From the sequence record MH494197.1: a DNA stretch of 64,000 bases; one strand, 5' to 3'. How positions within the stretch are numbered: the stretch's first letter is position 1; every line of letters begins with the position of its first letter. The position numbers and the translations under genes are program-made. The notes under the pieces were generated by a model. It was not told where the DNA came from, did not search any database, and was given only the letters and a program-made list of their open reading frames with translations. Shown piece after piece: positions 1 through 64,000 of the stretch.

Positions 1-194
1 CAAAATCATTTACACCATGCACATTCAATACACCGTCGATGAAATAGATTCGGTCAATGGTGAGTTCACGTTTATAATCCGAATCATCATACCAGCACAG
101 AACACGAATACCTTTATACTTTGTAGTTAGCTCTTTTCTAATGTAACTAAGTACTCGATATAACTTTTGAATAGCTCTAAGTCCTGCTCAAACA

Positions 195-455
195 TCATTG
201 TTCCTCGTATAATTCCATGTCATCAACTCCAACTTGGCGAATTGCAGTACTTCTTTTAAATGTACCTTTTTCATATAAACATACAGTTAAACGTATTTCA
301 CACTTCAATGCACTGTAATAAATCATATCAATAACACCATATGTTTCATACATTTCTAAGTATACATTTCGTCCTAAGTACTTTTCTTCTAAATCAGTAA
401 TTAGACTATTGATAAGATTACCTATCTGTGTTATATCTGTGTGAAATTTATCCAT
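195..455 (-). CDS. hypothetical protein
   Basis: 86-aa ORF in the dominant coding orientation; no recognisable motif. Confidence 0.5.
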   Translation of the reverse strand: MDKFHTDITQIGNLINSLITDLEEKYLGRNVYLEMYETYGVIDMIYYSALKCEIRLTVCLYEKGTFKRSTAIRQVGVDDMELYEEQ

Positions 456-643
456 TACAATAATCCTCTCACATAAAACATTGATGAAAATAGATAATCT
501 TCAGTACTGGAATTTAGTAGTTTATCAAAACTATAATTTTTATGCTTATTTTCATACAAAGACATTCTATAGTATCGTTCTATATTTTCTAAGTAGTCTT
601 TTCGTAATAACATCTGTGTTGTTACATTCACTATAATGTACCT

Positions 644-676
644 TAAAAGAAAAAGGGACCAATATATGATCCCTTT
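644..676 (-). terminator. Rho-independent terminator downstream of pseT
   Basis: minus strand GGGATC-ATATATT-GGTCCC followed by TTTTTCTTTT. Confidence 0.75.
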
Positions 677-679
677 GTA

Positions 680-1606
680 TTAGAAATTTCCTTCAGCCAC
701 TTGGAAAACTTTCAACCCAAGTAGCTTACGCCACATGAACACAACTTGATTGCGGTCATCATATACCTTTTAACATCGTAATGATCAACCACATTTTTCA
801 TGTACAGGTCGAATTTGACAACATCATCAGGACGTTTATCATCAATGTCTCGCATAAACAATGCATCGTAAGGAATACCCCAATTCTTAAGCCACTGTTC
901 GGTATCAGCACGACACCCTTCAGTACGCCCACTCATGACGATAATCTTGCGTTTATGAAAACTGCTTCTGCGATAATAGACAAAATAACTTCTTCGTCTG
1001 GTGTATCCGAGTACAGTACTTTCATCGAACGGGTTACGTCCCCATTTATGAGCAAGAGTACCGTCGATATCAACGATAATAGCAGCTTCTCGTGAATTAC
1101 CATAGTAACCAATGTGTAATGCCTTACTATAATAGTACGTATCTGCCATAGTGTCAATGATATTATCTTGTACTGAACGCTCACGCTGGAGGTTATATTT
1201 CTTACAAAGTTTTACGAACTCTTTAATCTTAAAGAATTCATGAACATCTGCACCACGGTCTTCATTAGGTACAAAATCATCATAGAAGTTCTTTTCTTTG
1301 TAATCATAACCATTATCTATAGCCCATACTTTCCATAGATTACGGAAATGTTGTTTAAGGTTTGTATCGGATATGATGATGTTCCAACCATTCTCTGCTG
1401 CTGAATTTGCTGCACTGAACTGTAAATTAGTTACGTACTGCTCATTAGCATCGTTGAATTTGTAAGCATCATGTGACCCAGCCATAGATTCACGAATATC
1501 ATCACGGTTGATGTTGATAGTCTTGGATTTGGCTTTTTAATCTCTTGCACTGCCCATGTAGTTTTACCACACCGTGCAATCCAACTGTTAGTGTGATAGT
1601 TGGCAT
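680..1606 (-). CDS. pseT: polynucleotide 5'-kinase/3'-phosphatase (T4 PseT-like), broken by apparent sequencing frameshifts
   Basis: N-terminal MPTITLTVG..G(C)GKTTW P-loop and NRDDIR in alternate frames upstream of track ORF 712..1485; HAD motif IIVDIDGTLAH, MSGR, FMRDIDDKRPDDVVK; C-terminus DDRNQVVFMWRKLLGLKVFQVAEGNF* in another frame. Confidence 0.92.
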
Positions 1607-1635
1607 CCTTTAATCCTCTAAAAATTTAACATGCT

Positions 1636-2414: not shown

Positions 2415-3566
2415 CTAGATAGTACTAAAATCCTTTAGTACAATTTTCATGTACTTAATAAGAGTCTCTTTGTAATCGACTTTCTTATTGTTGTACATTG
2501 CAAAGGCCAAGCCCTGACGATTCAGTTCATTAGTTAAACACTCCTGAACCTTCTTAGCGAATTCCTTTCGCTCCAAGTGCTTGTGTTCCTTGACGAAGCT
2601 TTCAACTTCATCTTGTAAAGCATTATAGCACGAAAAGACTAGTTGTTCCATTCTTAATATCTTTTGGGTAGCATATTCGTCAGTACTGAACAACTGTTTT
2701 AAATCATCACTCGAACCATTTAATACAGCTTCATATAAATGGGAATCGATTATAATACTGTCTTTCGTTAAATGCAAAGAACAATACCAGTCGGTTTTGA
2801 TTTTGCACATTGTACCATTATTTAGGATGCACACAAAACCTTCAATGTCAAGCATTTTCTTAACTTCTTCAACACTTTCTTTGAATGTAGCACGAACAGG
2901 GAAAGTGTAATGAATATCTTTACCTGTCATGTTAGTACTGTACTGTGCAAGGCATGGGAACTTATTACGTAATGCAGAACCACATAATAGTTCACCACTC
3001 TTGCGATGGCGAACGTTTAGTACAAATATTTGTTCAACCCGGTATGGTAATACAATACGGTACTCTGGACTTGTATACTCCAGATTAACAGTATAGCCCA
3101 AACGGTCTGCTTCGTCAATGTATTGATACAAATTTTGGTTCTCATTGAGAAGACGAGTACTGTTAATCGCATGGTCTGAATACAATGCAGTATGTGATTT
3201 ACAACGAATTACACCATCATTATCACGGTAAGTACTGATTACTGAACCATCCAACTTAGGCATCACTACTGCAATGTCATCGAATGTGGTATCAGCAGGG
3301 AACATTGTAGTAGGATTTTCGTAAGCATTGAAGAACTTTTTCATAGTACGAGCAGCACAACGAATCATATCACCGTCTTCATCAATTTCCCACATAGAAC
3401 CACGGGTTTCTAATGCATTGGGTTGCATGAAATCGGTATATGATGCTAGACGATAACTGAATACACGATATGTTCCACCAGCAGGACTTTTATGATCCAC
3501 ATAAAAGAAAGCCTCACGAGTATTACATAAGTGCATTAAATCTTCATATATTTGTAAAAGGGTCAT
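2415..3566 (-). CDS. rnlA: RNA ligase 1 (T4 Rnl1/gp63-like)
   Basis: intact 383-aa ORF; nucleotidyltransferase motif I KLDGS, motif IV EGFV, motif V KIKTDWY; T4-like N-terminus (FSYRLASYTDF, KFFN). Confidence 0.95.
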   Translation of the reverse strand: MTLLQIYEDLMHLCNTREAFFYVDHKSPAGGTYRVFSYRLASYTDFMQPNALETRGSMWEIDEDGDMIRCAARTMKKFFNAYENPTTMFPADTTFDDIAVVMPKLDGSVISTYRDNDGVIRCKSHTALYSDHAINSTRLLNENQNLYQYIDEADRLGYTVNLEYTSPEYRIVLPYRVEQIFVLNVRHRKSGELLCGSALRNKFPCLAQYSTNMTGKDIHYTFPVRATFKESVEEVKKMLDIEGFVCILNNGTMCKIKTDWYCSLHLTKDSIIIDSHLYEAVLNGSSDDLKQLFSTDEYATQKILRMEQLVFSCYNALQDEVESFVKEHKHLERKEFAKKVQECLTNELNRQGLAFAMYNNKKVDYKETLIKYMKIVLKDFSTI

Positions 3567-3826: not shown

Positions 3827-3827
3827 G

Positions 3828-9709: not shown

Positions 9710-10238
9710 TTATTTCCTCATGTATTTTATTACATCTTCAAATAGTTTAGTTTTCAGTGCATCATCATTACGTAGAAAAGTACTGAAGCTATTAAAATCT
9801 TCATTCTTGGCAAACTCACGCATCTGTGTGGAACTGTAGCGACTTACATTTCGGTCAATTCCAGCTTGAACTGCCTTGATTGAACAAAAATTATATAACT
9901 TCCCATTGTACGTGTCAAGCGTTTTTGGAATGGTTCAAGTCTGTCTGAACCACATATGAAAAGAACATCTAAGTACTTTCCATCCAGTTCTCTCATTATA
10001 TCAAACAGATTATCTTCTGTATAGATATTTTCTTGTACAGATGGGTAAAATCCTTCTGTATAGTACATTTTCAGTTCAGGAGGTAATGGGTTTTGATGGC
10101 ATCAGTACTGGTACTAAGGAATATTTTCAAATCAGCATTGTACTGTTCTTGTAGTGCTTGAGCTTTTTCAAACACTAAACCATGACCTCGATGTACAGGG
10201 TTAATTCTTCCGAATGTCACTACGCATGTTTCTTTCAT
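9710..10238 (-). CDS. HIGH-superfamily nucleotidyltransferase (phage 'cytidyltransferase-like'), frameshifted in the assembly
   Basis: manual translation across two apparent frameshifts: MKETCVVTFGRINPVHRGH ... ICGSDR ... YSSTQMREFA; track ORF 9844..10068 is the middle piece. Confidence 0.8.
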
Positions 10239-10760
10239 ATGTTCTTCATCACCTGACCAATAGATTTAAGATGGTTGATTTTAGCTGGAGTCAAATACTT
10301 ATCCAGTACTATTAAACAACTAGGGAATGGAGCACTGTCAGTCTTTTATCTGGTTCTTCAGGGATACCGAACTTTAAGCGACCTTTTATAAAACAAATAC
10401 AATCACAAACTTTCGCAGCATAATCCTGAAAGGCTATAGTATCAGTTCTTGATGGTACGAGAATCAGTACTGTAGCACCTTTGTTATATGCATCAACTGC
10501 CTTAGATAACCACGTTTTCAAATCACTGTACGGTGGGTTGAGCCACACGATATTGTTTCCCAGTCCTGTTCAAGTGAATTGTCTTCTGGTGTAAAGAACT
10601 TATCACACAATGCAGTTTCTTTGACACACGCTGCATCTAGTGTAAATTCCCAGAGTTCATCCAAATCTTCAAAGAAATCCTTTGGAGTAGTCCAGTTATC
10701 TTTTCCAGTACTGAAATGTACTGATTGTTTTTCTTCGAAGCATCCTTCTTCGACATACAT
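10235..10760 (-). CDS. dam: phage DNA N6-adenine methyltransferase (PF05869 Dam-type), frameshifted in the assembly
   Basis: W.TPKDFF, FTLDAAC, WLNPPYS (motif IV), LVPSRTDT, FIKGRLKF across track ORFs 10518..10760 and 10312..10548; TGA stop overlaps the next ATG (ATGA). Confidence 0.88.
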
Positions 10761-36151: not shown

Positions 36152-36194
36152 AATCCTATTTCCTTTAAATCTTCCAAAAATGTTTCATAATCAC

Positions 36195-42165: not shown

Positions 42166-42199
42166 AAATCCCTGTACTTTGAAGCGTACAAATATTGGT

Positions 42200-42626: not shown

Positions 42627-42712
42627 AAGAATGTCAATATCACCTAACTCTTCTGCATAACCAAAAATACATATACTGATGTTTTTGCTATATTAAATTT
42701 CATATTCTTCTC

Positions 42713-47811: not shown

Positions 47812-49963
47812 TTACTTTGGATCTCCTTGACTAATGCATCAACCCACATGTCTATATACATTTGTTGATAGTTTGTCCCTATGAGTGCCCTGCATAGAGT
47901 TCAGCTATCATTGCATGTTTTAGGTTGGCAGGATGCTCTTATCAGATTGAATCTTTACTCTTCTGTTGGCACATGTTTTCAGGAGTCTGATGTATTCAAA
48001 GCCTTGTAATTTTCTCATTCTTTAGATATCACCTTGTTACGTAAGGCACTTAACAATACGTCAGTGTAGATGTTTTGATAGTTTGTTCCTACGAAAGCAC
48101 CCAACTTCATTTCAGCTATTATAACACATTTGTCCTCTTGTGCAATAGACTTGTCTAAAGAAATACTAACAACTTTCCTTCTTATAGCTTGTAATCTCCA
48201 ATGATACTGATACTCATTTAGGGTTATCATTCTCTCGCCTCCATATCTCGGTTCTAATGTGTTGACATTGTGCTTCGATGAACATATCTATTGATTTGGC
48301 AATTGCGTTTTTATCTGTGCCAGTCATCAGTACAAGCATCTCGGCCTCACAGTGAAGTAAACGCATGATATCATAGGGTAATATTCCAGATACCGTGTCA
48401 TAGTGTTTCTGTGCCAGTGTCTGTAATAGTTTACAATACATTTTGTGATTTAGTCTGTGTCGCATTGTTTATTCCATTCTTTTTGGCCCTCTGGGTTTTA
48501 TATTGGATTTGGTTTCTTAATGCTGATAAGTATCGTTGAATGAACAGATCTTGATAGTTTGTTCCAATGAATTTCATAAGATAAAGTTCACCGTTGATAA
48601 CATCCACTTCAGGTGCACCATATAAGGCATTGTTTTTCTAAGGGCATGGATTAAAGAGAATAGGGCAGTTTGATACTCAACTCCTGATAAAGTCTTCATG
48701 TTTTGTGAGCCAATAATCATCTAGTTTATCCTGTATAACATTCATTAATTGTTCGACATATTCTGTGCAAAACTTATCTTGATATTGAGTCCCATAAAGT
48801 ACAGCAACCATAGCTCATTAACTTTAGCTCGCATTTGGTTCCATGTAAGGCTGGGGTCATCGTAGACTATCCTTGCTATAGGGTTAGTTTACGGACTATA
48901 GTTTCATATTCATCTAGTGTTAAGTGTTTCATTTACATTTGTCCCTTATTAGATCAGTGAGGGCAACTATGTGTGCAACAACATACTCTTCCTGAAAGTT
49001 CGTCCCAGTACAGCCATCATGCGTATATCGGTGGTGTTTATCCTGTGTTCCCTTACACATAAACCTTCTGTGTGAGGAAGTGTAAAATATTTGTTTATTG
49101 CAGCAATGATAATTTTATTCTTCTCGGAATTACTTAAATGTTTCATAGTTTGCTCTTAATGTATTTCTGGAGTGCAATTATATACTCATTCAAGAAGTGC
49201 TCTGATAATCTGTGCCGAGGAATGCACCCAATAGTATATCATTTTCCAATACTAATGCTAAGTTCAAATCATCAGTCTCTTCATATACTATGAGAATTTC
49301 AAGTTGTCTGGCAGCGACGCGTTCGGTATATTGATTTGAGTTTGCAATGATATTCATAGTTTACTCTTTATGTAATTCTTGAGTGCAATTAAGTATTCCC
49401 CTACATAATACTCCTGAAAGTCTGTATCCAAAAATGCACCCATAAGTAAATCTTTTTCTAATACCCTTGATAAGTTAAGGTCTGCATTTGAAAGGTATAT
49501 AAGTAAGATTTCACCCTGTGCGGAATTGAAACGTTTCTTATATTCTTCTGGTGTTAAAAAATCATAGTTTACTCTTAATATCTTCTATTAAAAATGAATC
49601 CAATCGTCAACATACTCTTCCTGATGGTTTGTGTTCAGTACAGCCAACATGCGGATCTCTGCTCTTGCAACTTGGATTTCAGTTTTAGAAAGGTCTTTGC
49701 TGATATCAAACATTAAGTCCATGTATTTCAAGATAAGACCGAATGATTGGGTTCGTGTTATAGTTTTCATTGTTTCCTCGTGGACAATATTTCATTTTTC
49801 AATGCATCCATATATTGAATCACCCATCTTCCCTGATAGCTTGTTCCCAATGTAATCAAAAGGTATAACTCAATTCGTTCTAAGTTTGTGTCTGTGTTAT
49901 AAATCTTTACCATGTTTTTACGTAACAGTTCTTGATAATCTTCTTTATTTAAAATACGCATTT

Positions 49964-50161
49964 TCATAGTCTACCTTTTATGTCCCTTCGTAATTCTTGT
50001 AAGTATAGTTCGATATACTTTTCTTGATAGTTAGTTCCTATGAAAAGTTTCATAACCAATTCACGCTTATATGCAATACCACGGATATGTGACATATGTA
50101 GGATATATGCCATGTTGGATATGAGTGTGTGGTTGTGCTCTTCTTCAGTTAAAATACGCAT
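49964..50161 (-). CDS. family B small protein (first gene of the array)
   Basis: MRILTEEEH start; LFIGTNYQEKYIELYL. Confidence 0.75.
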   Translation of the reverse strand: MRILTEEEHNHTLISNMAYILHMSHIRGIAYKRELVMKLFIGTNYQEKYIELYLQELRRDIKGRL

Positions 50162-50309
50162 AGGGACTCCATTAAAAATAATATCAATCCCATAATATAC
50201 GATTCATATAAAAGTCAATAACATTTTATTCGTAATACCCTTTATCGAAGTCGCTAAGGTTACCCGCCCTTTAGCCCCTACGCATTTTGCCATAGTCCAA
50301 TCCTTTTAT

Positions 50310-50379
50310 TCATAAAAGTCAAGGGATTACCTATGCATTTTTTAACGCTGAAGTTTAAAAATGCCTTGACTTTTTATGA
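50310..50379. repeat. nested inverted repeat at the array/early-region junction
   Basis: TCATAAAAGTCAAGG ... CCTTGACTTTTTATGA arms enclosing a GCATTTTTTAAC/GTTTAAAAATGC inner stem; third ATAAAAGTCAA copy at 50208. Confidence 0.7.
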
Positions 50380-50637
50380 TTCAGTACTAAATCCTTTTAC
50401 GCATTAATCCTTCGTTACGCTTACGATTATCTGTGTATCCCCATAGTCCTGCCATACTTCCACGCCAGCCGTCGCCCGGTTAGTCGTGCTGTCATCTGCT
50501 TAATGGTCTTAGGCTTTAGTGGAACCTGTTGCAGTACTGTACGCATAGTATCATCGACGTTATCGTGTACGCCTGCAATAGTGCCTAGGACGCTGTATAC
50601 GTGTATAGAACATATGTATGCCCTCCTGATATAGTTA

Positions 50638-50657
50638 AGGCCGCTACAAGGCGGCCT
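50638..50657 (-). terminator. GC-rich hairpin, probable terminator
   Basis: AGGCCGC-CTTGTA-GCGGCCT followed by TAACT. Confidence 0.5.
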
Positions 50658-51646
50658 ATGATGTTTGGTGATGTGTAACGCTTACAGTCCTAAGATAGTG
50701 CGTGCTTCGTTACGTTCCGTGCACAGCTGCATGATGTGAGCAAGTAAGTCCTTGCTAATGTATCCGGTGTTCATAGCTTCACGAATAGATACATCATAAG
50801 CACCGAACCCGTGCGAACGATACGCACATCATTCAGGTTAGTATTATAGATACCGCCGAGATCAACGGCTTCGAATACTACATCAACAGAATATTCATTG
50901 TTGCCATCGTGGAAGTTTTCCAGTGCAATAGTATTGGATACCGCCCAACGTTTGCAGTTTCAATGATGCGGCACTGTTCCGGTTGGATAGTGCCATTACT
51001 TACAGCGTACTCCAGTGCATCTTTACCAAAAGTCCGAGCCAGTACTAAAACGTCAGCGAAGGAAGTGATTGAGAAGGTCATGATAAAACTCCTTAATTTA
51101 GGAGGGAGAACCATTTCCTCTCTATGTAAAACATTATACATGAATCTAAGTACTATGCAAGTACTTTTACATTTTAATACCGGATTCAGGTAGCGGTGAG
51201 ATCCATATTCTGGATCGGTTTCGGTCCAGTACTGTAAATCGATAGTACCTTTCGCGTTAATCTTGTCTACCAGCTTATTCATCTTAGCGTATACTACGTC
51301 AGCATCGATGCGTTTAAAGCCAGTAGCTTTAGTGAAGTAGTAGTGATTTGCTTCACTATCATTAAGGATATACCGAGCACCGTTTGCCGTTTGTGCGATA
51401 ATGATTGAGTATTCTACGTTACGGTCGAGGCCGTCGATGAATACAGAGGAAACATTAGTACGGATGAAAGCTTTAACGATAGCGATTGAAGTAGTCATTT
51501 TGAATCTCCTAACTTTGTGGGCCGTCGCACCATTGCCGCCCTACGAGATACATTATTGCAGTACTGATATACTTTGTCAATACTTTTTATTAATAGTTTT
51601 AGTTCCACCAGCAGATAGTTACTCACCGTTATTAACTATATATTTT

Positions 51647-51724
51647 GGATACACCTATGCACCCTGTGGGCTAGTTTTTGTCTATGCGTATATATAGCAG
51701 GACTGACCGAGTCAATCCCTTTTT
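51647..51724 (-). repeat. CCCAYAGGGTGC element, copy 1
   Basis: GGGATTGACTCGGTCAGTCC..GCTATATATA..TAGCCCACAGGGTGCATAGGTGTATCC. Confidence 0.85.
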
Positions 51725-52022
51725 ATTCTTTTTGTTAGATGATTCTCCAATCATCAACGATCATGGTAAGATACCGAACCAGTGATTCGAGTGATTCGTG
51801 TTCTCGATAGTCTGCCGCTCCACCAGCGGTACAAGTACAGCCGATTAAGCCGTTTTGTAGTTCCGGATCTTTACGTCGATCTGGTTGGCTTTAGCTTCTT
51901 TCAGTACTTCAACCGGGCGAGAGCGATAGACATAATGTTTTACTCCAAACTATTGGCGGGAGAACTATTCCCCGCTCTATGTAAAACATTATACATTACT
52001 GGTTAGTACTGTCAAATAGTTT

Positions 52023-52280
52023 TTATGAAATATCTTCGATGTAGTCGGCCCATTTCATTTTTTCAGTACTGTCAATGGCTACCGGATTATTTGGATCAAA
52101 CCATTCACCATTACCGCAGTACATACCCACGGCTACGGTTTTATAGCCATCCCGGGCCGCACACCACGACATTGCACGATAGATATGGCCTTTAACTGGT
52201 TGCAGTACTGGTAACGTTTTATGGTCTTCTACGTAGGCCATAGCTTGTGGATTTACCCGATATTGTGTGAACTGTTCCAT
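52023..52280 (-). CDS. hypothetical early protein
   Basis: 85-aa ORF with its own promoter (52309) and RBS. Confidence 0.65.
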   Translation of the reverse strand: MEQFTQYRVNPQAMAYVEDHKTLPVLQPVKGHIYRAMSWCAARDGYKTVAVGMYCGNGEWFDPNNPVAIDSTEKMKWADYIEDIS

Positions 52281-52716
52281 TATGTTTCCCCTTGTAGTTA
52301 GTAAAGTTATTACATCAGTACTATCAAGCTATGTCAATAGTACTGAAATAAAACTTTTAGATTAGATTATTGAGGCCGTCAATGGTAGACTCACTTTCTT
52401 CTTTCTCCCATTGTCGGTAGTACTTCCATGCTTCATGATAGGTGGCGATCAGTTCATCTTTTGATCCGGTTACATGCCAGTACTGAATCACGGTGAGCGG
52501 TGTTATAGATAGAATCGAATGATTTCTTCTCTTCTGCCGTTAGCTACTTCCCGCATCAGTTCATCAAAGTTAGCCATTTTATTACTCCTTTTAGTGGGGA
52601 GGATATCTCCCTATGCAAAACATTATACTTTGTTTTAGTTATTATGCAAGTACTTTTTCATATAAACATTAAATTCTACACCGCCGTAACCTTCCACGAT
52701 GATATGTTTTGCGTTA

Positions 52717-52902
52717 TCACGTTTGCACATAGTGAAACCATCGTTTACGTGTTTTGCATTTTCGGGCGACATCACCGATAGCGGCACATACGGCACTAAT
52801 AACAGTATTCCGCAAAGTACTGGTATCATTGGCGGTCATAGTAGTTTGCAGTACTACGTTGTCGTATACGTGTGCATTGATAGTGATTTCGATAGTGTTC
52901 AT
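52717..52902 (-). CDS. hypothetical early protein (frameshifted)
   Basis: own cassette promoter at 52950. Confidence 0.55.
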   Translation of the reverse strand: MNTIEITINAHVYDNVVLQTTMTANDTSTLRNTVISAVCAAIGDVARKCKTRKRWFHYVQT

Positions 52903-53233
52903 GGTGTATCTCGACTGGCGGGAGAACTATTCCCCGCTCTATGTAAAACATTATACGTTAATCTAACTACAATGCAAGTACTTTTAAATTTTATTTCCGA
53001 TATAGTCCGGTCTATTCTTTTCGGTCATACGCTTTGCTAATGTTTGCATATGGCTTATTGCTTGTAGTGTATCCTCTTCCGGGATGAATCGAGATAATCA
53101 GGATCATTCTTCACCTTGCAATGATTATGATAGCGTAGTACTGCCAGTACTTTTTAACTTCTTCTACTGTCATAATAAGTACCCACTTCGTTAGCTTTCA
53201 GGTTAGTATCAATCATCAGTGGATTTTTGTAGT

Positions 53234-53440
53234 TCACAAAACGAGTAGTTTTCTCGATAGCGAATCCCATATAATCCAGCTTACTAACAGTACATTCATT
53301 CTTAAAACTTCTTTCGCTGCATCGATGGCTGATTGCATGGATAACCGACCATCTAAATTAATGTTTCCAAATGATCCACCAGCAGAAGTAGGATTACCGT
53401 TCATATCTTTAATGATCATAGTAGCGGAGTAGCTGGACAT
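53234..53440 (-). CDS. hypothetical early protein
   Basis: own cassette promoter at 53494. Confidence 0.6.
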   Translation of the reverse strand: MSSYSATMIIKDMNGNPTSAGGSFGNINLDGRLSMQSAIDAAKEVLRMNVLLVSWIIWDSLSRKLLVL

Positions 53441-53527
53441 AATTTTGTTTCCTTTTATTGGTGTGGGAGAACTATTCTCCCTTGATGTAAACTATTATAC
53501 AGTACTGATATACTTTGTCAAATACTT

Positions 53528-53931
53528 TTATTCGCCCATATAGATTAGATTATCATCGCCTACATAGGATCGCAAACGTTGATTTCTTCGCAGTACTTCG
53601 TGAATACATCGCCATAGTGACCTAAACCACGATCCCAAAACCAGTTCCGTGACCTTCGCGGGTAAGGAACAGATCATGACCAGCTTGCTCATAACCGTAA
53701 TCAATAAACATACCGCGAACTACTTCCAGATCATTACCGTGTTTCTCAATGAAGCGAGAACATGCAATCACTGCCGCTTGATGGGCTTGCTCTGATAATT
53801 CATAATCTTCCGTAATCGCCGTTCTCATTGTGTACAGTACTGAATTGCATAGCTTCAATGTAAGCTACAACCATTGCAGCATGATTTTTATCGTTAGTGA
53901 TGTTCCGAGCGAGATTAGTAGTAGTAGACAT
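53528..53931 (-). CDS. conserved phage protein with GHD(L/F)(F/W)LTRxGHGxGFWD motif
   Basis: GHDLFLTREGHGTGF; one extra T restores WDRGLG; own cassette promoter at 53983. Confidence 0.7.
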
Positions 53932-54347
53932 GATTTTATTCCTTTTAGTATCGGGGAGAACTATTCTCCCTTGATGTAAACTATTATACAGTACTAATAT
54001 ACTTTGTCAATACTTAATTACGTTTAAAATGATATGTGCCTTTATCATCCTGTACGCCCCATACTGATTTACCATCAACACCAGTGAAGCCGGATTGTAA
54101 TTCAATATGGAAACCATTATTATCAACTACAAAAACTTTTTATTTTCATCCCGATAACATTGATATTCTGAATCAACATTAAAGGCCGCATCATTCAGAA
54201 GATTAGAAGCGTAAATGCAAGTCATTGTAGTCATGATTTTATTCCTTATTGCCGTGGAACCGTTCCTCTCGATATAAAACATTATACTTGATTCTAAGTA
54301 TAATGCAAGTACTTTTTAAAATAGTTTTCAGTACTGAATACTTATAT

Positions 54348-54435
54348 AATAGATACACTTCCGCACCCTATGGGTCAGTGAGTTATCTCTCAATGGATAT
54401 ATATAGCAAAGGACTGACCGAGTCAATCCCTTTTT
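54348..54435 (-). repeat. CCCAYAGGGTGC element, copy 2
   Basis: GGGATTGACTCGGTCAGTCC..CTGACCCATAGGGTGCGGAAGTGTATCTATT. Confidence 0.85.
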
Positions 54436-54507
54436 AATCTTTTTATCGTGTTACCTTACTTGCTGCCACATCACGCTTTTTATAGTACTGATTCCAGATA
54501 TTGCTGG

Positions 54508-54825
54508 TTAAACCGTAATCAAGTACTTTAATAAGTCCATTACGATCCCGCCGATATTCTGTTTTCTGATATCTCTTATCGTTAGTGTTGATAATGTATC
54601 ATCGACGTGTTGTAGTGCATCAGCAAAGCGGTGCTGGCGTTCAATGGCATTACGTTTAATATTGTACTTTAATTCATTGCACGCGTTTACGTGCTTTACA
54701 CTGCCTTTACTTGCAGTACTCAACCGATCCATAACGATAAACATATTATCAGGATCGCATAAATGCATATGCACCTTTGCAAAGTACTGTTTCAACTGAG
54801 GGCGGTCATAGTCTAAAAATTCCAT
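54508..54825 (-). CDS. hypothetical early protein
   Basis: 105-aa ORF with AAGG RBS. Confidence 0.55.
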   Translation of the reverse strand: MEFLDYDRPQLKQYFAKVHMHLCDPDNMFIVMDRLSTASKGSVKHVNACNELKYNIKRNAIERQHRFADALQHVDDTLSTLTIRDIRKQNIGGIVMDLLKYLITV

Positions 54826-55892
54826 ACCTTACATTCAGTTTCATTTTGTTCGACACCCGCATCACAATTCGCGACCTTAATCACTAACCGATCATTTAAA
54901 GCGAAAACTATACGGGAAGATCCGCCCGATGATCTCCAGTCCAGCTAACCGACAAGCTGAAAGGATCTCTTTGTTGGTTTCCATTTCTGACAGTGTACGG
55001 ATGAATTTAGTATAATTACGCATTGCATGTTCTCCTTGAGTTAATGAAACTATATTACAGTACTTTACTATCAATGGCAACTACTTTTTAACATTAACGG
55101 CGTGAATCACTTCCTTAGTGTTTTTAGTACTGAATACTTTCGCCGCTCCTTGTTCGACCGTGATACGATAGCGACCATTAACATCAACCATATTAATAAA
55201 GTCCGGCGTGCTGAATGGTGTTGTTTTGCATTTGAGTACTGTTAACAGTTCCACCAGCGATGTAGTTTCTTTGATACGTTTTTCTAAAGTAATCATTTTG
55301 TTTCTCCCCGTGTTGGTATGTACATATAGTACTAAAACATTTGAGTACTGTCAATTAGATAATATTATATTTCTTAAAATAAAATGCGTCTTGTGTTGGT
55401 TGATACTCGATACCGTTACCGTTATTGACTTCAACTAATAAACCTTTGTCAATAAGTTTTTAATAGTACGATACCCTTGTTGAAAATTGGTAAAATGTGA
55501 ATCATTACGAAAGGTATAACCGTGCTTAACTGCTTCATCAATAGTTTTCTTTTCGATTTTAGATAATTTCATTTTGTTTCTCCCGTGTTGGTATATGTAC
55601 ATAGTACTAAAACATTTGAGTACTGTCAACGTGATATTAGTTTTATTTTCTTATTGTATTGTTGATGCTCATAAAGGTTTATCTTTCCTGTGTTCTCGAT
55701 TACTATCCTGTTGTTAGTGTCCACATCGATTACACGCAGTTTCCGTTGCTTAACTTCCGGGTAATAGGTTACCATTAATAAACTCATTAGCAAGCTGTAC
55801 GGCCTTTGTGATGATTCTCTTCGGTGCTTTATAGTGTACCCGTAAGATGTTATCTTTATATAGTTGAACCTTAATCATTTTGTTTGTCCTAT

Positions 55893-55916
55893 AAAAAGGC
55901 GGGAACTGATCCCGCC
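55893..55916 (-). terminator. Rho-independent terminator
   Basis: GGCGGGA-TCAGT-TCCCGCC followed by TTTTT. Confidence 0.8.
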
Positions 55917-57581
55917 GTGTTGTTAGTACTGCAAGTTATTAGATAACCGGCGGCGTTTACTGTATACTGTTACACGATTACCCTTACGGTCGTGTCGGAT
56001 CTCTTTCTGGTTGCGAATCAGTTCACTTGGACGCTTAAGGTTTGCCGTGATCCGCGTGAGTCCATGCATTGGCATTTACCTGTACTTTGATATCAGAACC
56101 AGCGATAAACTCATCTTGTGCGTCAGTATTGCCGCCAGCATATCCGCTCGTTTTAGTTCTGCTGCTGTTAGTACTGGCTCAGGTGAATTCACAATATCAG
56201 AGATCTTTGAACTGTACGGCCCAGCGTTGGCCTTTCGGTGCATCTTTGCCCATGTCTTTAAATGCTGCTCCTTCCTCGCGTGCAACAATACGGGCAGCTT
56301 CACGGGTAGCGTAGAATTTAGTAATCATGGTATACATCCTATTAGTTAAGTTAGTACTACAAGTTAGAGTCTATTATAAAGTACTATCTGGGCAATGTCA
56401 AATAGTACTTTAAATGGATTCTATTACATGTCTTTCTTACGTTTTACATCGTGGTAGCGAACTGTTATTTCTTTGTTGATCTCTTCCTCGATGCGGTGAA
56501 TAACTTTTTCTTTCGGGTTGAAACCTATAACGGTTTCTTTAATGATCTCAAGCCCGTGTATTCGCCTTGTGTACCGTAACCGTATGTAAAGGTTTCGTGT
56601 CCCGTGTCTTCCAGCGGTCGCCAATTAACGCAGACACGTAGCAAGAGTGGTAAGTATTGCCGTGTGAATCAGTCCACCGATTAACGTTAATGTCAAAGGA
56701 GGTTACAATTTTCAATTCTACTTTCTGGGCAAGGATCATAGCCATTTTATTTCTCTCTTTTAGTTAGGAGGAACCATTCCCTCACTTGATGTAAACTATT
56801 ATACAGTACTAAGATACTTTGTCAATACTTATTTTTGGAAAGTTTACGCATTAATTCTACGCTTTCTTGTGAACGTTTTGCTACCGGCAAGCTGCATGGG
56901 TAGTAAACATTTTGTATAGTCTGACGCTTTGCCACCGAACCGAGCGGCACGTTCACGGGCACTTGGAACTAATACTATTTCTTTCTTGCAGATAGTGCAC
57001 TTAGCCATTTTATTTCTCTCTCTTTGTTAGAGGGGAACCGTTTCCTCACTCGATGTAAACTATTATACAGTACTAAGATACTTTGTCAATACTTAATTAT
57101 TGTAAATGTCGTGAATAGTGATAAAGTTTTTACGACCGTAAACCTGCAAATCAATATCAATGTAGTGCTTATCTAGTACATCCTCGACGCTTAACGCGGT
57201 GTCGTGGATATCTTCGTAGAATTGAGTATCTACAATCTTGCTTAAGTCATCCGGCGTTAACTCATCGTTAAGCAGTTGAACCGCCGGATATCTGCTTCAC
57301 GTTTCCAGTCTTCCAGTTAGTAGTCAGTACTTGTTCGATTTCGTTAGCTGTCAGTAGAATCCGCATTTTTATGTTTCCTTATCAGTGGTTGATGTAAGTA
57401 TTATACTCGTTTACTTTCTATTGTCAAACTATTTTATCAGGGAGTTTTTCGTATGTCTTACTCGACTACTTAACGGGGTTACTTGTTTCGTTCCCCGTCC
57501 TGATGTAAAACATTATACTTGATTCTAAGTACAATGCAAGTACTTTTTAAAAATAGTTTTCAGTACTAGCCACCAGCAAAC

Positions 57582-57653
57582 AATAGATACATTTATGCAC
57601 CCTGTGGGCTGATTTGTTTCTATGCGTATATAATAGCAAAGGACTGAATCCCT
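57582..57653 (-). repeat. CCCAYAGGGTGC element, copy 3
   Basis: GGGATTCAGTCCTTTGCTATTATATA..CAGCCCACAGGGTGCATAAATGTATCTATT. Confidence 0.8.
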
Positions 57654-58959
57654 TATTCAATTATTTTTAAACTTCTTTCGGGTTGCGATAGGTGATAGCG
57701 TTCGGGTACATTTGTTTAATGTTATTCCATGCCCGGTTGACATTGTAACCACTTGATCGAATCAGTTGGTTACTACCGACACCTTGAAACACTACTTCGA
57801 ATAAGAATTCTTTCATGCTTTCACCTCGCGATCTGCTTTACCTTTACGCCGACATTACTAATTGTTCGCGTTGCCATAAGTCGAGTGATACAAAAGTTTT
57901 GCGGTATCACTTTTAGGATACTCGCCATTAGTACCTAACCGATAAAACAGATCTTTCAGTACTGATAATTCTACTTGGATCATTATACTTTCTCTTTGTT
58001 GGGAGGGAACTATTCTTCCGATATAAAACATTATACACTTTATTCAGTACAAGTACTTTTAATCTTTCAGCCAATGATCCTGAATGAATTTTTCACCGGA
58101 ACCTTGCTGCATTGATTGTAACAGACGTTCACGATGAGCGGCGGCGAATTGCTCAGTACTATGCGTTACACCGGTTGATATCTGGATTCACCATTGGGGC
58201 TGATGTATTGTACATCCCACGGTTTTTCGTTAGTATCAGACCATTTACGAACGATTAGTTGACCTTGCATTTTTCTTTCTCTTAGTGGGGAGAATCATTT
58301 CTCCCCTTCATGTAACTTATTATACAGTACTAGATTATCTTGTCAATAGTTTTATTCACCTTGTTTGAATTTAGTTTTCTCCATTGATTCCATGATTGCA
58401 ACCAATACGCCGTGGATCTCGCTTAACGCGGAATCACTAAAAGCATTAATGAATAGTCGATCATTCTCGCGAATATTTTTAATGTACTTTTCAGCAGTAG
58501 TTGCGAATTCATTCAACGGTAGATCAAATGCTTTATCCCATGATGGATGGCGTAATTGTAACAGTACTGGATTATCACGATCACGGGAAAACGTACCAGT
58601 GATGAAACATACGCCCGAATACTTTCGAACTGGCAACGGACTTCCTTTGTGATAGTAGTATGAATGTACATTTATTGTTATCCTCTATTAAATTAATATT
58701 ACAGTTTATGAATCAATTCTTTATCTAAGCGATAGCGTACATTATTAATAGTAACGGCATTGTTTTAATGCTACGCTGTACAGGTCCACCAGCAATAACA
58801 AATGTTGCTTTATTACCCCGAACAATGATAGCACTTCCGTGATTACCGAAATCATCTTGTACTAAAATACTTGATAAGTTTTCCATTTTATTTCTCTTAG
58901 TAGGGAAGATGTTTCCTTGATGTAAGTACTATAACAGTACTGAAAACTAATTGCAAGTA

Positions 58960-59313
58960 CTATGATAAAATCATGATAGGATATTCACTATCGATCAGTA
59001 CCTCGAATCCGAACCCTTCGTACCATTCTTTAAGATTAAAGGCGTTATCTTCTCCGTATCGCATTCTAAGATGATACAATCTGAATCATCAGCGGCATCG
59101 ATAAAGGCATTCATTAATTCGTTACCTTCACCATTGCCCCGACTATCAGGATCAACATAAAGAGAATCAATGAAAGCAACACGGTCATAATCAAGATCCG
59201 GTGCAATGATTCCACGTTTAACAAACCAGTACTGCAATTGTGCTACTTTGCTGTACCTGATAACCAGTGATCTCGCCATTGTCAGTAGTACGCGTGATAT
59301 GTTGTATTCCCAT
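58960..59313 (-). CDS. GNAT-family acetyltransferase (frameshifted in the assembly)
   Basis: FIDSLYVDPDSRGNGEGNELM (acetyl-CoA-binding motif A) and, in the next frame, LKEWYEGFGF (motif B); own promoter at 59343. Confidence 0.8.
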
Positions 59314-59877
59314 GATTTCTATCCTCAGTTAAGATATAAAACATTATACACTATCTTTCAGTACTGTCAATTACTTTTATCTCATAGATCTATGCCAACA
59401 ATTACGCGGATCTCTTTAAAAGTACTATCATGATCCTCCGGCAAGTAATACAATACATGCACCTATAACGGCCCGGCGTCGATTCTCAGGGATTTTACCG
59501 CCGCAGTCGAGGCAATGTACAGTGATTCTCTTTGTGCGTTAATTTGCTTTCTAGCGTGGTTAACGGCGGCCTGAATCACTGCGTTAATCTCGTCTTGTTC
59601 GGCCCCGTCTTTCGCGAATCCTACAGCCATTATTTTAACCTCATTATAAAAATACTATAGTACTGTAATGCTACAATAATACTACTAGTGCTAATCTTAT
59701 TCAAACCACATGATACTACATATCCACCAGCATTACCACGGATAGTAACGCCTTTGTACTGTCTATATAAATTCAACTGCGTATATTGCCTTTGATCAAG
59801 AATTGATCAGAATTATACGCCTTATGCTAAATTGATCCAGTACTTTTGATCATTTATTGATCGATGTTATATAGTTA

Positions 59878-59912
59878 CATTTGTGCACCCTATGGGTTAG
59901 TGACGTTCTCGT
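59878..59912 (-). repeat. CCCAYAGGGTGC element, partial copy 4
   Basis: CACTAACCCATAGGGTGCACAAATGTA downstream of the cassette promoter at 59925. Confidence 0.7.
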
Positions 59913-60224
59913 CTTGATGTAAGTATTATGCCAGTACTGGAGGATATTGTCAATAGATTATTTTAATTTTTTCTATCATTAATTAATGCTTTCAGTACTA
60001 TACTAATAACTTGCAATGATTCATCAATGACAATGAAATTATTCTCTTTCATTAGATGATAGTTACCATTGATTGTATATTCTAACGAGTACTGTTTACG
60101 TTTAATTTTTGATAATGTTTCTATTTGTTTTTGTACTGATTTCATGCTAATCATTGTCAAACGTCCTGTAACGCATTCTAACGAGATAAACGGTTGAGTA
60201 CTGGCATTGTATAGGGTAATGATT

Positions 60225-60252
60225 AAAGCCCACCAGCGTTAACCAGTGGGCT
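60225..60252 (-). terminator. probable terminator
   Basis: AGCCCACTGG-TTAACG-CTGGTGGGCT followed by TTAAT. Confidence 0.55.
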
Positions 60253-62066
60253 ATAATCTTACATCTTGCGGATAATCTTAACAGTATCTTTCACCGATTT
60301 ACCGTTTTGCTGACATTGCTCGATCATCGCGTATTGTTCTGCGGTCAGATCCTCGCCAGTTTTTGCCAGTACTGCGTCGATGAATGAATCCAGTGCGATC
60401 ATTTTGTTTCTCTCTTAGGTTAAGTTAACTACTGTTTATAAAACTTATTATACAGTACTATCAAACTATGTCAATAGTACTGGTAATATATTTTAGCGGT
60501 AGTCGTCGTATGCTTTATTCACGGCGAATATAACTTTCAAAGGCTTCGTCTACCGTTTCATACTCCCGAACATAATCACCATATGAAACTACATACATAC
60601 CTTTTGATCTTCAAACGTCATGATGATAGAATCCAGACCAACGATTTCAGTTTTTGCGATGATAGCCATTTTTAATTCCTTAGTAGTGTAGTTGATAAAA
60701 GTTATTATGTCAGTACTATCAAACTATGTCAATAGTACTGTGATAATATTTTAGTTAATGATAGTCAGTGTAAAATTGTAATCCCCTGCCCGTATAGTAC
60801 TTTATCGCCGAACGTTCCAACACGTTTCATATTGCAATAGATACCCATAACACTTTTACATCTTTGATATTCCGAACGCCAGTAATATCCTTGTTTAAAT
60901 GATCGTGATCAGAAAATAAAACTTGTTTTGCATTTTTCAGTACAGTGCAGATATTAGCCATTTTGTTTTCTCTTCTGTTAGTGGGGAGAAGTTTTTCTCC
61001 CTTGATGTAAACTATTATACAGTACTATAATCTATTGTCAAACTATTTTTTATATTATTCGAAATCTTCTGGACCGGACTGATAATCATCTTCACCGTAT
61101 GCACTTTCTAACCGCTCGCCAGTGCAATCATCAGTTAGTGAGTCATCCTCATAGTTCACGTCTACGCCAGTGATGTAAAACTGGCTATCGTCTGGATCAT
61201 TGAAATTAATTTTCTGGATGTTTACAATAACTGTATTGATGCCGTGACACCGCCATCAGCCGTTACAAAGTACTGATATTTTTCACAACCGCCTGAATTG
61301 AAACCGTAATTAATTTCGGCCCGACCATCACTTAAACGCAGTGTCTGAGCGATGATTTCATTTTCAAAGTTAGATTGAGCAATTGCAATAGTCATGATTT
61401 GTTTCTTATTATCAGGGAAACCGTTTCCCTTTCGATGTAAAACATTATACGCTTATCAGGAAGTAATGCAAGTACTATTTCACGTTAATTTCAAAGTACT
61501 GCTCTTTGATGTTTTCCTGTTGGTAAATCTCGTTTAATGCTTTAAGATCTAAAACCTGTTTACCTGCTGCCTGAATATACTTTTAAGAGTCGCTAACAGC
61601 TTCTCAGGCGTGTTTGTAGTCTTACGTGTTGGGATCTTATCGTGCCCCATAGCGTAGTACTGCTTACGTGCTATAGTACTGATAACACTGCGGTACGGTT
61701 CCATGATCAGCTTGTCTGTATTCGTCGCTATCCCCAAACTTCATACCGTGGATCGCAAAGGTCATCATCATGCGGTCGTTATCGCGGATATTGTGGGGCA
61801 GTCGGCAAGCTCGCGAGTCAGTGACATAGTGATCCCCACGTCGCCACCCAGCGGTAAAGGTCGGGCGATAAAGAAACCGTTAGGGAATACTTTCAGGAAG
61901 TTTTCTTGAACTGCTGCGACGAATTCGATGCTATTCATAATTCATTTCCTTAATTAGTGGGGAAGTTGTTTCCTCTTGATGTAAAACATTATACGCCTAT
62001 TGAGATAGTTTGCAAGTACTTTCTACAAATACTTTTAAAATAGTTTTCAGTACTCAATACTCATAT

Positions 62067-62156
62067 AATAGATACACTTATGCACCCTGTGGGCTAGTGA
62101 GCTATCTCTCAATGAATATATAATAGCAAAATGGCTGACCGAGTCAACCACTTTTT
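62067..62156 (-). repeat. CCCAYAGGGTGC element, copy 5
   Basis: GGTTGACTCGGTCAGCC..TGCTATTATATA..CTAGCCCACAGGGTGCATAAGTGTATCTATT. Confidence 0.85.
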
Positions 62157-63652
62157 CATTTATTTTAGCTTTTAGAATCGCCGCCTTTCGCGTCATGCCT
62201 TGCTTGATGTATTCTGTACTTTCGCTTTACGTGCATTCGCTTTATTTGCTTTCGTAAACGCCGAACAACTTTTATAGTTTAAACCTGTTGGATTCATTTA
62301 AATCACCATAAAGAATAGATAGGTTACTAACAACGCCGCGATCAATGCACCGACCGAACTGTAATAAGCTAATGATCTCATTTTTAGCCTGAAAATAATG
62401 TTTAATTTGAGCGGCGGTCAGTGCACAATTACGCAGGAAGTTTTCTGTATAACTTTTGCGAGTACTGAAAGAGAATTGACCTTTGCTGCTGCCGATAGTA
62501 ACATCAAACCGAGCGTTGTATTGTTTCATTTTGTTTCTCCTGTTATTGGGGAGAATCATTTCTCCCTTCATGTAAAACATTATACAGTACTAAAACTAAT
62601 TGCAAGTACTATTTTTAGATTTACGCAAACTTTCTACCATCTCAGGAGTAAGGTCTGCGGGTAGGAAACTACTTCATCAACGAAACGTAAAGGAATACCC
62701 CAGCGAAAGGTGAACGTGCTTTCTTAGTATTACTCTTTTTGATGCTTTCATTTCATATTCTTAATTAGTGGGGAGAATCATTTCTCCCTTCATGTAAAAC
62801 ATTATACGCGTTTAAAACTAATTGCAAGTACTATTTGAAAGTAAATGCTCATACGCTACATTAACTACGTTTTCAATAACCGACTGTACAGAAAGATCCC
62901 CACTTCCGGCTATAGTAGAAATCGCTTACAGTAGTGTCATCGTATGCAAATACTTTACCGTGACTGCATCAATCACATACATATTAACCTTTAAGATGTC
63001 GATCTTATCCTGTACAGTAAGCATATTAATTAACCTTTTAAGTACTGACTTAAGTAATCTTGTTGATCTTCGGTGATTGCAGCCATCTTCCCTAGTACTG
63101 GATTAATGATATAATCCCTGTAACGTCCTGTAACGCATTCTCAGGCGGTTTAACGGCTGGGGTAGCCATAGCCATTGCCGACTTGTTCGACGCTGTAACG
63201 CTCATAAAGGCGGCATTCTTCCGGTGTTAACATAGCATCAATGCGTTTCATTGGTTTAATGATGCTTTCGATCTCATTCAGTACTTGATTAACGTTCATG
63301 GTATAATCCCAATATAAGCGGCCTAAATCGACCGCTAACGATGTTTTGATTAATAGGTGTATGGTTGACGTTCAAACAATGATTGCACGTTGTACGCCCC
63401 GCTTATGGGCTTTGCTGGTAAATCAATTTTATATTGTTCACGCTTAAAGATAATAAAACGGCAATTGTTTTAACATCAAAATTGATTGAACGTTCCGAGT
63501 TTACCATCGTGCACAAATACAAGATAACCGCTCGCTACTTGTTTTGTAGTACTGGTTGCAACCATAGACCGCCGAACATGTGTACCTGCGTCGATTAAAG
63601 TACTGATATTTTTCATTTTACTATCCTCTTAAGTTGATTTAATTTCTTTCCC

Positions 63653-63690
63653 TATGCAGACACTGTACCAAAGTATCTGCATAAAGTAAA
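63653..63690 (-). promoter_or_regulatory. promoter TTTACT-N17-TACAGT overlapped by an operator-like inverted repeat
   Basis: TATGCAGA(C)ACT-GTACCAA-AGT(A)TCTGCATA spans the spacer, -10 and +1. Confidence 0.5.
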
Positions 63691-64000
63691 GCTAATTAAA
63701 GATCTTTTTACGTTTTACATCCTGTACAGTACAATGCAACGGGATAGACAAATCATTGCACAAACGATAGAGGGAGGTTTCATCAGTATTAAGCCCGTCT
63801 ACTGATTCCTTTAAGAGAGATAACGCCGTTTGTTGGTATGCATCTTCATAGCCATAAGTAAATGATTCAACCGCCAGATCATTCAAGCCGTTATCCAGTT
63901 CGACGCTTACATGACAAGAATGATGTATTGCCATATGAATCAGACCAACGTTTACCGTCAACATTGATTGCACGGATTGCAGCCGAAACGGTGTTAATGA

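Follow-up and report, generated by a model that had tools for sequence, protein, structure and literature searches.

An iterated AGTACT palindrome in phage CMSTMSU

The 64-kb stretch of DNA analysed here (the window) is identical (100%) to bases 62001-126000 of MH494197.1 and belongs to Escherichia phage CMSTMSU, an Asteriusvirus and a jumbo myovirus (~350-390 kb) of the RaK2/121Q/PBECO4 group. The window has a G+C content of 34.1% and every one of its genes lies on the minus strand. Its most conspicuous feature is a short palindrome, AGTACT, which a preliminary description of the sequence had already singled out and which is the subject of this study. The MH494197.1 record is flagged UNVERIFIED_ORG and displays many apparent frameshifts or single-base indels when compared to phages fEgEco12 and WPEC3: 14000 bases of CMSTMSU align with 14195 bases in WPEC3, and most of the early open reading frames (ORFs) between 51 and 64 kb of the window are broken in the record. 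These indels are more likely to be sequencing errors than to reflect real pseudogenes. Because of these frameshifts, the codon-level and genome-wide work was run on fEgEco12 (PP777464.1), which is 98% identical, free of frameshifts, has experimentally mapped ends and is colinear with the window (71875→7609 in fEgEco12 coordinates). Window positions ~50260-64000 map within the 20,993-bp direct terminal repeat of fEgEco12 (PMC13070987), the two copies of which span 1-20993 and 353741-374733.

AGTACT occurs 236 times in the window, when 21.4 copies are expected from base composition and 42.9 from an order-2 Markov model; the nine positions counted by hand in the preliminary description (150, 246, 377, 503, 1015, 2241, 2421, 2682 and 2934) are all correct. 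The excess is nested, rising from 3.0-fold for the GTAC core (603 observed, 198 expected) to 11-fold for AGTACT and 70-fold for the octamer CAGTACTG (43 observed, 0.61 expected). Similar values were obtained for the whole fEgEco12 genome, with 1115 AGTACT against 126 expected and 261 copies of CAGTACTG against 4.0, corresponding to 2.3-fold (GTAC), 8.8-fold and 65-fold excesses, and each 10-kb bin is at least 3.3-fold enriched for the hexamer. AGTACT ranks first for over-representation among all 4096 hexamers of the window, and it is the only one of the 64 hexamer palindromes to be strongly enriched (11-fold, with runners-up at 2.3-fold). An observed/expected ratio of 11, and not below 1, rules it out as a restriction-avoided palindrome. 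Side by side with this excess, the window presents classic restriction avoidance, since 24 of the 64 six-base palindromes, GGTACC and CGTACG included, are missing altogether; the general remark that phages avoid short palindromes thus holds for this DNA too. The missing palindromes nearly all contain G+C (GGATCC, CTGCAG, GTCGAC, GGTACC, CGTACG), and CTAG is found at 0.37 times its expectation in the window.

The bases flanking the hexamer follow the preference H-AGTACT-D, C/G being the best pair, while G at -1 and C at +1 are disfavoured (3-5 fold depleted); among 977 sites of fEgEco12, 221 have the flanks C..G and 6 have G..C. Beyond ±1 base frequencies are at background, so that the information ends at 8 bp, and enrichment is graded by similarity to CAGTACTG. 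A perfect palindrome, with symmetric preferences at its flanks and no signal beyond 8 bp, is shaped like a site for a dimer or an enzyme. A dispersed repeat or mobile element, such as repetitive extragenic palindromic (REP) sequences or miniature inverted-repeat transposable elements (MITE), was rejected, as there is no flank information beyond the core and longer similarity is confined to the promoter cassettes of the terminal repeat. An order-4 Markov null predicts 196 AGTACT in the window. It is no test of the signal, because its expectation derives from how often AGTAC and GTACT occur, and both of these 5-mers are ~5-fold enriched; order-4 or maximal-order models absorb the signal and are uninformative as a refutation.

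The excess is independent of coding

In the window, 149 AGTACT sites lie inside ORFs and 87 outside, with 61/35/35 in the three minus-strand frames. When synonymous codons were shuffled within each gene, the ORFs of the first 34.1 kb were left with 29.6±4.4 sites, compared to 102 in the real sequence, and the distribution by frame fell from 51/24/27 to 15.5/8.7/5.5. The ORFs of fEgEco12 contain 912 sites, against 249±14 after the same shuffle, which keeps proteins and codon usage, and 149±12 after shuffling of codon order, which keeps codon composition alone. Every frame contributes (435/171/306 against 134/46/70), each being 3.2-4.4 fold enriched. The codon pair AGT-ACT spells 52% of the Ser-Thr dipeptides when 15% is expected from codon usage, while the reverse pair ACT-AGT stays below expectation (43 against 81). 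Moreover, two of the dipeptides that can accommodate the motif are themselves over-used (Ser-Thr, 786 against 536; Val-Leu, 758 against 592), and therefore the pressure extends into protein sequence. A codon or amino-acid artefact is ruled out by the two shuffles together with the dipeptide analysis. The DNA-level constraint proposed in the preliminary description is thus borne out: the excess is seen in all frames and in non-coding DNA, and amino-acid and codon usage do not suffice to explain it. The two outcomes that would have spoken against such a constraint, a ratio of about 1 after codon control and an enrichment limited to a single frame, were both looked for, and neither was found.

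A genome-wide carpet interrupted by two islands

AGTACT sites form two layers, an even carpet of ~2-3 sites per kb and a set of fixed positions in early promoters. Outside the terminal repeat of fEgEco12 the density is 2-3 sites per kb, with coding and non-coding DNA about equal, which rules out the idea that sites are merely more numerous where constraint is weak. There, genes carry sites evenly over their length, apart from dips at ribosome-binding sites and gene ends, and gene class and strand make no difference. Sites are spaced a little more regularly than at random (coefficient of variation 0.86-0.89), and no gap exceeds 2 kb. Strict periodicity was not seen; besides the slight under-dispersion, distances of 20-24 bp are modestly over-represented, which promoter pairs account for.

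The preliminary description had the excess persist throughout the window. This is true of most of it, but two islands contain no AGTACT at all (Table 1); the gap in island I measures 8631 bp, compared to a mean spacing of 362 bp. GTAC is still frequent in the islands, as (A/G/T)GTACA on the sense strand, and several of these GTACA copies were placed by eye within a recurring Phe-Gln-Tyr ... Leu-Val-His coding pattern. The island ORFs encode ~70-120 residues, overlap, and several look paralogous by eye. Asteriusviruses differ in these islands, and no other large part of the genome is devoid of AGTACT.

AGTACT sites occupy fixed positions in immediate-early promoters

As the preliminary description had noticed, sites are densest in the promoter-rich end of the window, where 50.3-64 kb holds 88 of them, or 6.4 per kb. 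The terminal repeat carries ~55 very small genes, most of which have their own near-consensus σ70 promoter. Within the repeat of fEgEco12, site density is 4.7 per kb in coding and 13 per kb in non-coding DNA. AGTACT was found in 19 of the 20 σ70-type early promoters of the window and in 25 of 28 in fEgEco12, with sharp peaks at -27/-26 and at -7, counted from where the -10 hexamer starts. At -7, the arrangement reads AGTACT-G-TATAAT; at -27/-26, the site either runs into the -35 hexamer (AGTAC|TTGCAT) or flanks TTGACA. The two promoters listed in Table 1 illustrate both classes: in the first, one site abuts the -35 hexamer and the other lies directly upstream of the -10 hexamer, while in the second, the -35 hexamer shares its first base with the first site.

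We considered that AGTACT could itself be a σ70 core element, i.e. part of the -35 hexamer or of an extended -10 (TGn). This was rejected, as the TG in AGTACT-G-TATAAT is one base too close to the hexamer; promoter sites are also found in several registers (-31 to -7), which argues against identity with a core element. In a homologous promoter of Justusliebigvirus PHB05, TTGACA and TATAAT are kept and TAATAATAAA stands in place of CAGTACTAAG. AGTACT is therefore dispensable for σ70 recognition.

Many promoters of the repeat are followed within ~10-50 nt by a short G/C-rich hairpin that lacks a T-run, for example GGGGAGAAATGATTCTCCCC at 58287-58306. Being downstream of the promoter and devoid of a T-run, such hairpins would be located at the transcript's 5' end instead of acting as terminators.

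Some small early genes, one of them together with its promoter, share 85-90% nucleotide identity with unrelated coliphages (window 52984-53176, 56752-57069 and 60757-60983). The phages sharing these cassettes belong to the Vequintavirus, Justusliebigvirus and Phapecoctavirus groups and include records labelled Campylobacter phage. Such identity indicates a recent horizontal exchange of early cassettes. In a shared gene, the other phage has AATACC and CAACAA where CMSTMSU has AGTACT and CAGTAC; in a third shared gene, both phages have two AGTACT.

Table 1. Location of AGTACT-related features and selected genes in the 64-kb window
Feature	Position	Strand	Description
RNA ligase gene	2415..3566	-	From annotation; example of the carpet, with 5 AGTACT inside (2421, 2682, 2934, 3156, 3231)
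Dam-type (PF05869) N6-adenine DNA methyltransferase gene	10235..10736	-	From tblastn and Pfam; split over three frames in this record
AGTACT-free island I, 8.8 kb	34048..42837	-	Array of small, overlapping, apparently paralogous ORFs
AGTACT-free island II, 5.5 kb	44882..50382	-	Same kind of region as island I
Part of ~21-kb direct terminal repeat	50260..64000	-	Array of very small immediate-early genes; 88 AGTACT (6.4 per kb)
Example early promoter	60447..60481	-	Sense strand AGTACT-A-TTGACA-TAGTTTGAT-AGTACT-G-TATAAT
Example early promoter, second class	62579..62610	-	AGTAC|TTGCAA ... AGTACT-G-TATAAT

Sites are conserved and their density is maintained

The terminal repeats of fEgEco12 and 121Q share 87.7% identity. 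Between them, full conservation is seen for 27 of 30 sites in promoters and 42 of the 51 elsewhere, compared to 56.6% of all hexamers. In promoters, the core six bases of the sites are 97.8% conserved, the neighbouring bases 85.4% and the -10 hexamer 100%. Between genera, where orthologues have 55-69% amino-acid identity, 18-45% of the sites remain in register, when the average hexamer does so in 9.5-19% of cases, and site totals are equal (84 against 84). Equal totals with shifting positions imply turnover at constant density. Altogether, these comparisons argue that purifying selection acts on the sites.

Density held during positional turnover, like the even carpet independent of gene class and strand, would suit a signal in DNA transactions. 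The palindrome would then be where the phage machinery for recombination, replication or nicking preferentially enters or cuts DNA, a Chi-like or priming hotspot whose density is selected for recombination-dependent replication or for exchange between related phages. The phage does encode RecA/UvsX-like, Mre11/Rad50-like, endonuclease VII and TnsA-like proteins and several HNH nucleases, and recent work on the cyanobacterial palindrome HIP1 ties that motif to homologous recombination and transformation (bioRxiv 10.1101/2024.09.10.611283, PMC13756078). However, such a role leaves unexplained the fixed positions in early promoters and the fact that promoter sites are the most conserved of all; no sequence-specific nuclease was identified, and known recombination hotspots are oriented rather than palindromic. 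We regard this explanation as clearly unlikely.

AGTACT enrichment is confined to a clade and contrasts with the host

Klebsiella phage RaK2 and Cronobacter phage GAP32 are enriched in AGTACT (7.5-fold and 6.2-fold), as are all the metagenomic relatives with ≥90% identity in the major capsid protein (3.2-6.5-fold). Enrichment is weak at 72% capsid identity (2.4-fold) and about 1 or below at 64-69%, while Pseudomonas phage PA5oct has 3 sites against 16.6 expected. A single 50-kb sample of E. coli K-12 contains 3 AGTACT against 11.6 expected (0.26), with GTAC at 0.71; this amounts to 0.06 sites per kb in the sample and 2.8 per kb in the phage, a ~45-fold contrast. The early regions of three other coliphages (loci L095-L097; Vequintavirus, Justusliebigvirus and Phapecoctavirus) carry 0-5 AGTACT per 12-20 kb, when 4.0-6.4 are expected, and their GTAC observed/expected ratios are 0.38-0.61. 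AGTACT is thus a strong discriminator between this lineage and both the host sample and the three other coliphages.

One related lineage, an environmental jumbo phage represented by locus L039 (IMGVR_UViG_3300044959_000303, 50176-71393), whose capsid protein is 65% identical, shows an excess of another palindrome, with 68 TTCGAA against 7.1 expected and 313 TCGA against 72 (4.3-fold). The TTCGAA excess extends to all three frames and persists after synonymous shuffling (57 against 22). The same locus has other biases, namely CCGG (91 against 25), TTAA (7 against 206), CTAG (2 against 72) and TTTAAA (0 against 20). This single 21-kb locus hints that different lineages may iterate different palindromes.

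The enriched clade coincides with phages of Enterobacterales hosts, which raises the idea that the phage gathers binding sites of some protein conserved across Enterobacterales, e.g. SlmA or LexA. The SlmA site has an AGTACT core, and the LexA half-sites CAGTA and TACTG overlap in CAGTACTG. Yet the SlmA-type flanks (GTG...CAC) are precisely those found least often: GAGTACTC is present at 6 of 977 sites when ~31 are expected from composition, TGAGTACTCA occurs twice, and the 3-5 fold depletion of G at -1 and C at +1 led us to reject an SlmA-binding site. As for LexA, its half-sites would be wrongly arranged, without a spacer. The E. coli sample is itself poor in AGTACT, and the three other coliphage regions, which are low in GTAC, are not enriched in it either. 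A host factor therefore appears most improbable as the reason for the excess.

Modification and repair

In order to survey the proteins that could act on AGTACT, Pfam and PHROG scans were run on 486 ORFs no longer than 230 residues and on about 30 proteins taken singly. Two DNA methyltransferases were recognisable, a C5-cytosine enzyme (PF00145, 286 residues) and a Dam-type enzyme (PF05869, 174 residues), and no further methyltransferase was present among the families listed (the best 25 of 36 in two of the four batches). The gene of the Dam-type enzyme is unbroken in fEgEco12 (g162, L005:11064-11588). The C5 enzyme is a poor fit to AGTACT, because the palindrome contains no CpG and bisulfite data on RaK2 are reported to place 5-methylcytosine in CpG context (PMC3622015). 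The Dam-type enzyme is 45-47% identical, by tblastn, to the methyltransferases of Lactococcus phage MP1 and Staphylococcus phage phi11, so that its nearest outside relatives are found in Gram-positive phages; as a query in the search for related loci it returned 121Q only. M.Phi93DAM, a small NPPY-only enzyme of that kind, makes G(m6A)TC, as established by SMRT sequencing and DpnI/DpnII digestion (PMC4190342). Homology and published data on relatives thus point to CpG-context and GATC targets for the two methyltransferases. Ten restriction enzymes cut fEgEco12 DNA as predicted, ScaI and RsaI not being among them (PMC13070987), and the DNA is therefore not hypermodified. We found no ScaI or RsaI digests of these phages in the literature.

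These data bear on the idea that AGTACT or GTAC is an epigenetic mark, i.e. the target of a phage DNA-modifying enzyme (a methyltransferase whose specificity has gone unrecognised, or one of the many proteins without family) whose modification is useful for the timing of promoters with replication, for the distinction between phage and host DNA, or for protection from host enzymes cutting GTAC or AGTACT. Type II specificities typically take this form, an uninterrupted palindrome of 6-8 bp around a nested 4-bp core, and HIP1 is nested in the same manner (PMC4390886). The two methyltransferases are conserved in the clade (PMC3622015, PMC5259590), the L039 lineage is enriched in another restriction-type palindrome, TTCGAA, and the neutral to depleted AGTACT content and low GTAC of the E. 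coli sample and the other coliphage regions hint at a restriction pressure that a phage with ~1000 sites must escape. The targets suggested for both enzymes and the lack of a third one in the scans speak against such a mark. Besides, GGTACC and CGTACG are wholly absent, so GTAC per se is apparently unprotected, and modification accounts for the tolerance of sites but not for their enrichment. We consider an epigenetic mark rather unlikely.

The 18 one-mismatch neighbours of AGTACT have observed/expected ratios of 0.60-4.8, none being clearly depleted; for the transition neighbours, the values are 1.14 (AGTATT), 1.42 (AATACT), 1.58 (AGCACT) and 1.21 (AGTGCT). This speaks against a product of very-short-patch-type repair, as known for CCWGG in E. 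coli, for which depleted transition neighbours would be anticipated. Given these ratios and the probable CpG and GATC targets of the methyltransferases, the suggestion of the preliminary description that a modification or repair system creates or maintains the site has found no support so far.

More generally, a lineage-specific bias of repair or gene conversion could make AGTACT from near-matches and leave a site with no function. Sites in all frames and in non-coding DNA would follow from such a neutral process, as would the graded enrichment with similarity to CAGTACTG and the observation that the differences between acquired cassettes and their homologues in other phages fall exactly on AGTACT/GTAC positions. 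Against it stand the neighbours just described, the conservation of site cores beyond that of their flanks, and protein sequences that are bent towards the motif. Outside the repeat, moreover, non-coding DNA is no richer in sites than coding DNA, while early promoters are 5-fold richer, and two adjacent islands of the same genome escape. In view of these points, a neutral origin seems very unlikely.

Other genes of the region

A polynucleotide kinase/3'-phosphatase gene lies near the RNA ligase 1 gene (window 712-3566), the two forming a pair for RNA repair like that of T4. The Pfam matches of the small-ORF batch covering 46-125 kb of fEgEco12 include a 2H phosphoesterase domain and a cyclic-phosphate-processing receiver domain. 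One small early protein encoded in fEgEco12 1-46.5 kb (~window 25-64 kb) gave a match to a ParE-like toxin domain (PF24732, E=6e-11).

A putative reader of AGTACT

We tentatively favour the view that AGTACT, with CAGTACTG as its optimum, is a selected recognition site for a symmetric, lineage-specific DNA-binding activity, which would use it in the terminal repeat as an operator and over the rest of the genome as a mark, the reader itself being putative. This view rests on the symmetric 8-bp motif, the evidence for purifying selection, the operator-like registers in promoters, the dispensability of the site for σ70 and the ~45-fold contrast between phage and host. The binding site for a phage DNA-organising protein, one of the possibilities raised in the preliminary description, is what fits the anatomy best, namely the symmetry of the 8-bp motif and its operator-like promoter positions; the protein is putative here as well. 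We infer the existence of a protein that reads AGTACT, its encoding by the phage and the effect of its binding.

According to the proposed mechanism, a symmetric and probably homodimeric factor binding double-stranded DNA, restricted to the enterobacterial RaK2-like lineage, would read AGTACT/CAGTACTG, and selection would keep the density of its sites. In the terminal repeat, where immediate-early genes depend on σ70, the 1-3 sites placed over the -35 and directly upstream of the -10 would serve as operators, through which early transcription would most likely be switched off, or timed. Elsewhere, the near-even carpet of about one site per 360-400 bp would mark phage DNA. Since the motif is ~45-fold rarer in one host sample, the factor could find, coat or organise phage DNA preferentially.

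Several points weigh against this proposal. No candidate reader was found: helix-turn-helix, ribbon-helix-helix, Phd/YefM, AbrB and ScaI-type families are absent among those listed for the 486 small ORFs and some 30 proteins scanned (the best 25 of 36 in two of four batches), and ~80% of the proteome is without family assignment. Contiguous palindromes of 6-8 bp are met more often with restriction/modification enzymes than with classical operators. The positions in promoters could come partly from duplication of promoter cassettes, which would make them less independent, and biased gene conversion could mimic the conservation of sites. The host contrast is drawn from one 50-kb sample. Finally, 16.6 kb of early genes, in the two islands, do well almost without sites, which makes a strict role in whole-genome coating unlikely.

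Among the proteins annotated as transcriptional regulators, no Pfam family was found, and their PHROG families are unnamed or, for one, named virion structural protein; one of these proteins, g185, gave no significant match against the PDB. A protein encoded at fEgEco12 111745-112185, outside the window, is annotated as a starvation-inducible DNA-binding protein, the name used for Dps. It matches DUF5856 as well as a PHROG named starvation-inducible transcriptional regulator, and is conceivable as a general DNA-binding protein.

A broader and more speculative extension, which we hold to be doubtful, is that in jumbo phages whose DNA is unmodified, identity may be encoded in the sequence: ~1000 palindromes avoided by the host and by rival phages would be read by a lineage factor that tells phage from host DNA and shuts off immediate-early promoters, and the palindrome could be switched between lineages, as the TTCGAA/TCGA of L039 might illustrate. 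If true, this would be an evolvable barcode with a role comparable to that of the hypermodified bases of T-even phages.

The AGTACT excess is real, robust and clade-wide and, as far as can be told, has not been described before: it is not mentioned in the papers on RaK2, CBB, fEgEco12 and Sharanji, nor did full-text motif searches return it. Phages are textbook palindrome avoiders, and a clade of 350-kb phages that accumulates a ScaI-type site ~10-fold (the octamer ~65-fold), bending codon choice and protein sequence alike, needs a positive explanation. Two alternative predictions follow from the feature, that AGTACT carries a modified base or that the ~80% of genes without assigned function include one for an abundant protein binding this site specifically; a role at nearly every immediate-early promoter is predicted as well. 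In practical terms, ScaI/RsaI fingerprints and simple k-mer counts pick out this clade, and engineered or therapeutic derivatives may need their AGTACT sites retained.

Comparison with known systems

Restriction-site avoidance is present in the window, through its absent six-base palindromes, and for GTAC in other coliphages; AGTACT does the opposite, being enriched despite its ScaI-type sequence. Contiguous GTAC-centred palindromes are read by dimeric proteins at SlmA sites (GTGAGTACTCAC) and at Phd/YefM-type operators (TGTACA core). AGTACT shares this architecture, but SlmA-type flanks are selected against here and the PhdYeFM domain is absent among the Pfam families listed.

Like the GATC sites of the Dam/SeqA system of E. 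coli, AGTACT is a short palindrome found once per few hundred bp, with uses that would be both genome-wide and promoter-specific. GATC is barely enriched over chance in E. coli. In contrast to that system, the protein scans revealed no AGTACT methyltransferase and no SeqA/MutH-like reader. Phage proteins of the SPO1 TF1 type bind preferentially to sites in the DNA of their own phage and act as repressors of early promoters. The logic proposed here is similar, with a phage factor that would prefer phage DNA and sites that overlap early promoters; while TF1 relies on hydroxymethyluracil and a few preferred sites, the bases of these phages appear standard (PMC13070987) and a short sequence is repeated ~1000 times.

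The cyanobacterial palindrome HIP1 (GCGATCGC) is over-represented 15-300-fold and contains the targets of two orphan methyltransferases (PMC4390886, PMC5861425). Like HIP1, the motif described here is an octameric palindrome with a nested 4- and 6-bp core and a tens-fold excess (65-fold in fEgEco12); it occurs in all frames of coding DNA and also outside genes, is conserved above background and is clade-wide. The HIP1 analogy drawn in the preliminary description thus stands for the statistics (nested palindrome, all frames, conservation and spread through a clade); its link to modification or repair is so far unsupported. AGTACT differs from HIP1 in its sequence, which is not GCGATCGC, in its residence in a coliphage and not in a cyanobacterial or cellular genome, in having no cognate methyltransferases that could be assigned, in its weakly regular spacing, and in an extra layer of fixed early-promoter positions for which HIP1 is not known. 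It is the closest known statistical analogue of HIP1, an analogue and not a family member, and with E. coli K-12 hosts it offers a second, genetically tractable system for the 30-year-old question that HIP1 raised, namely why a palindrome is iterated.

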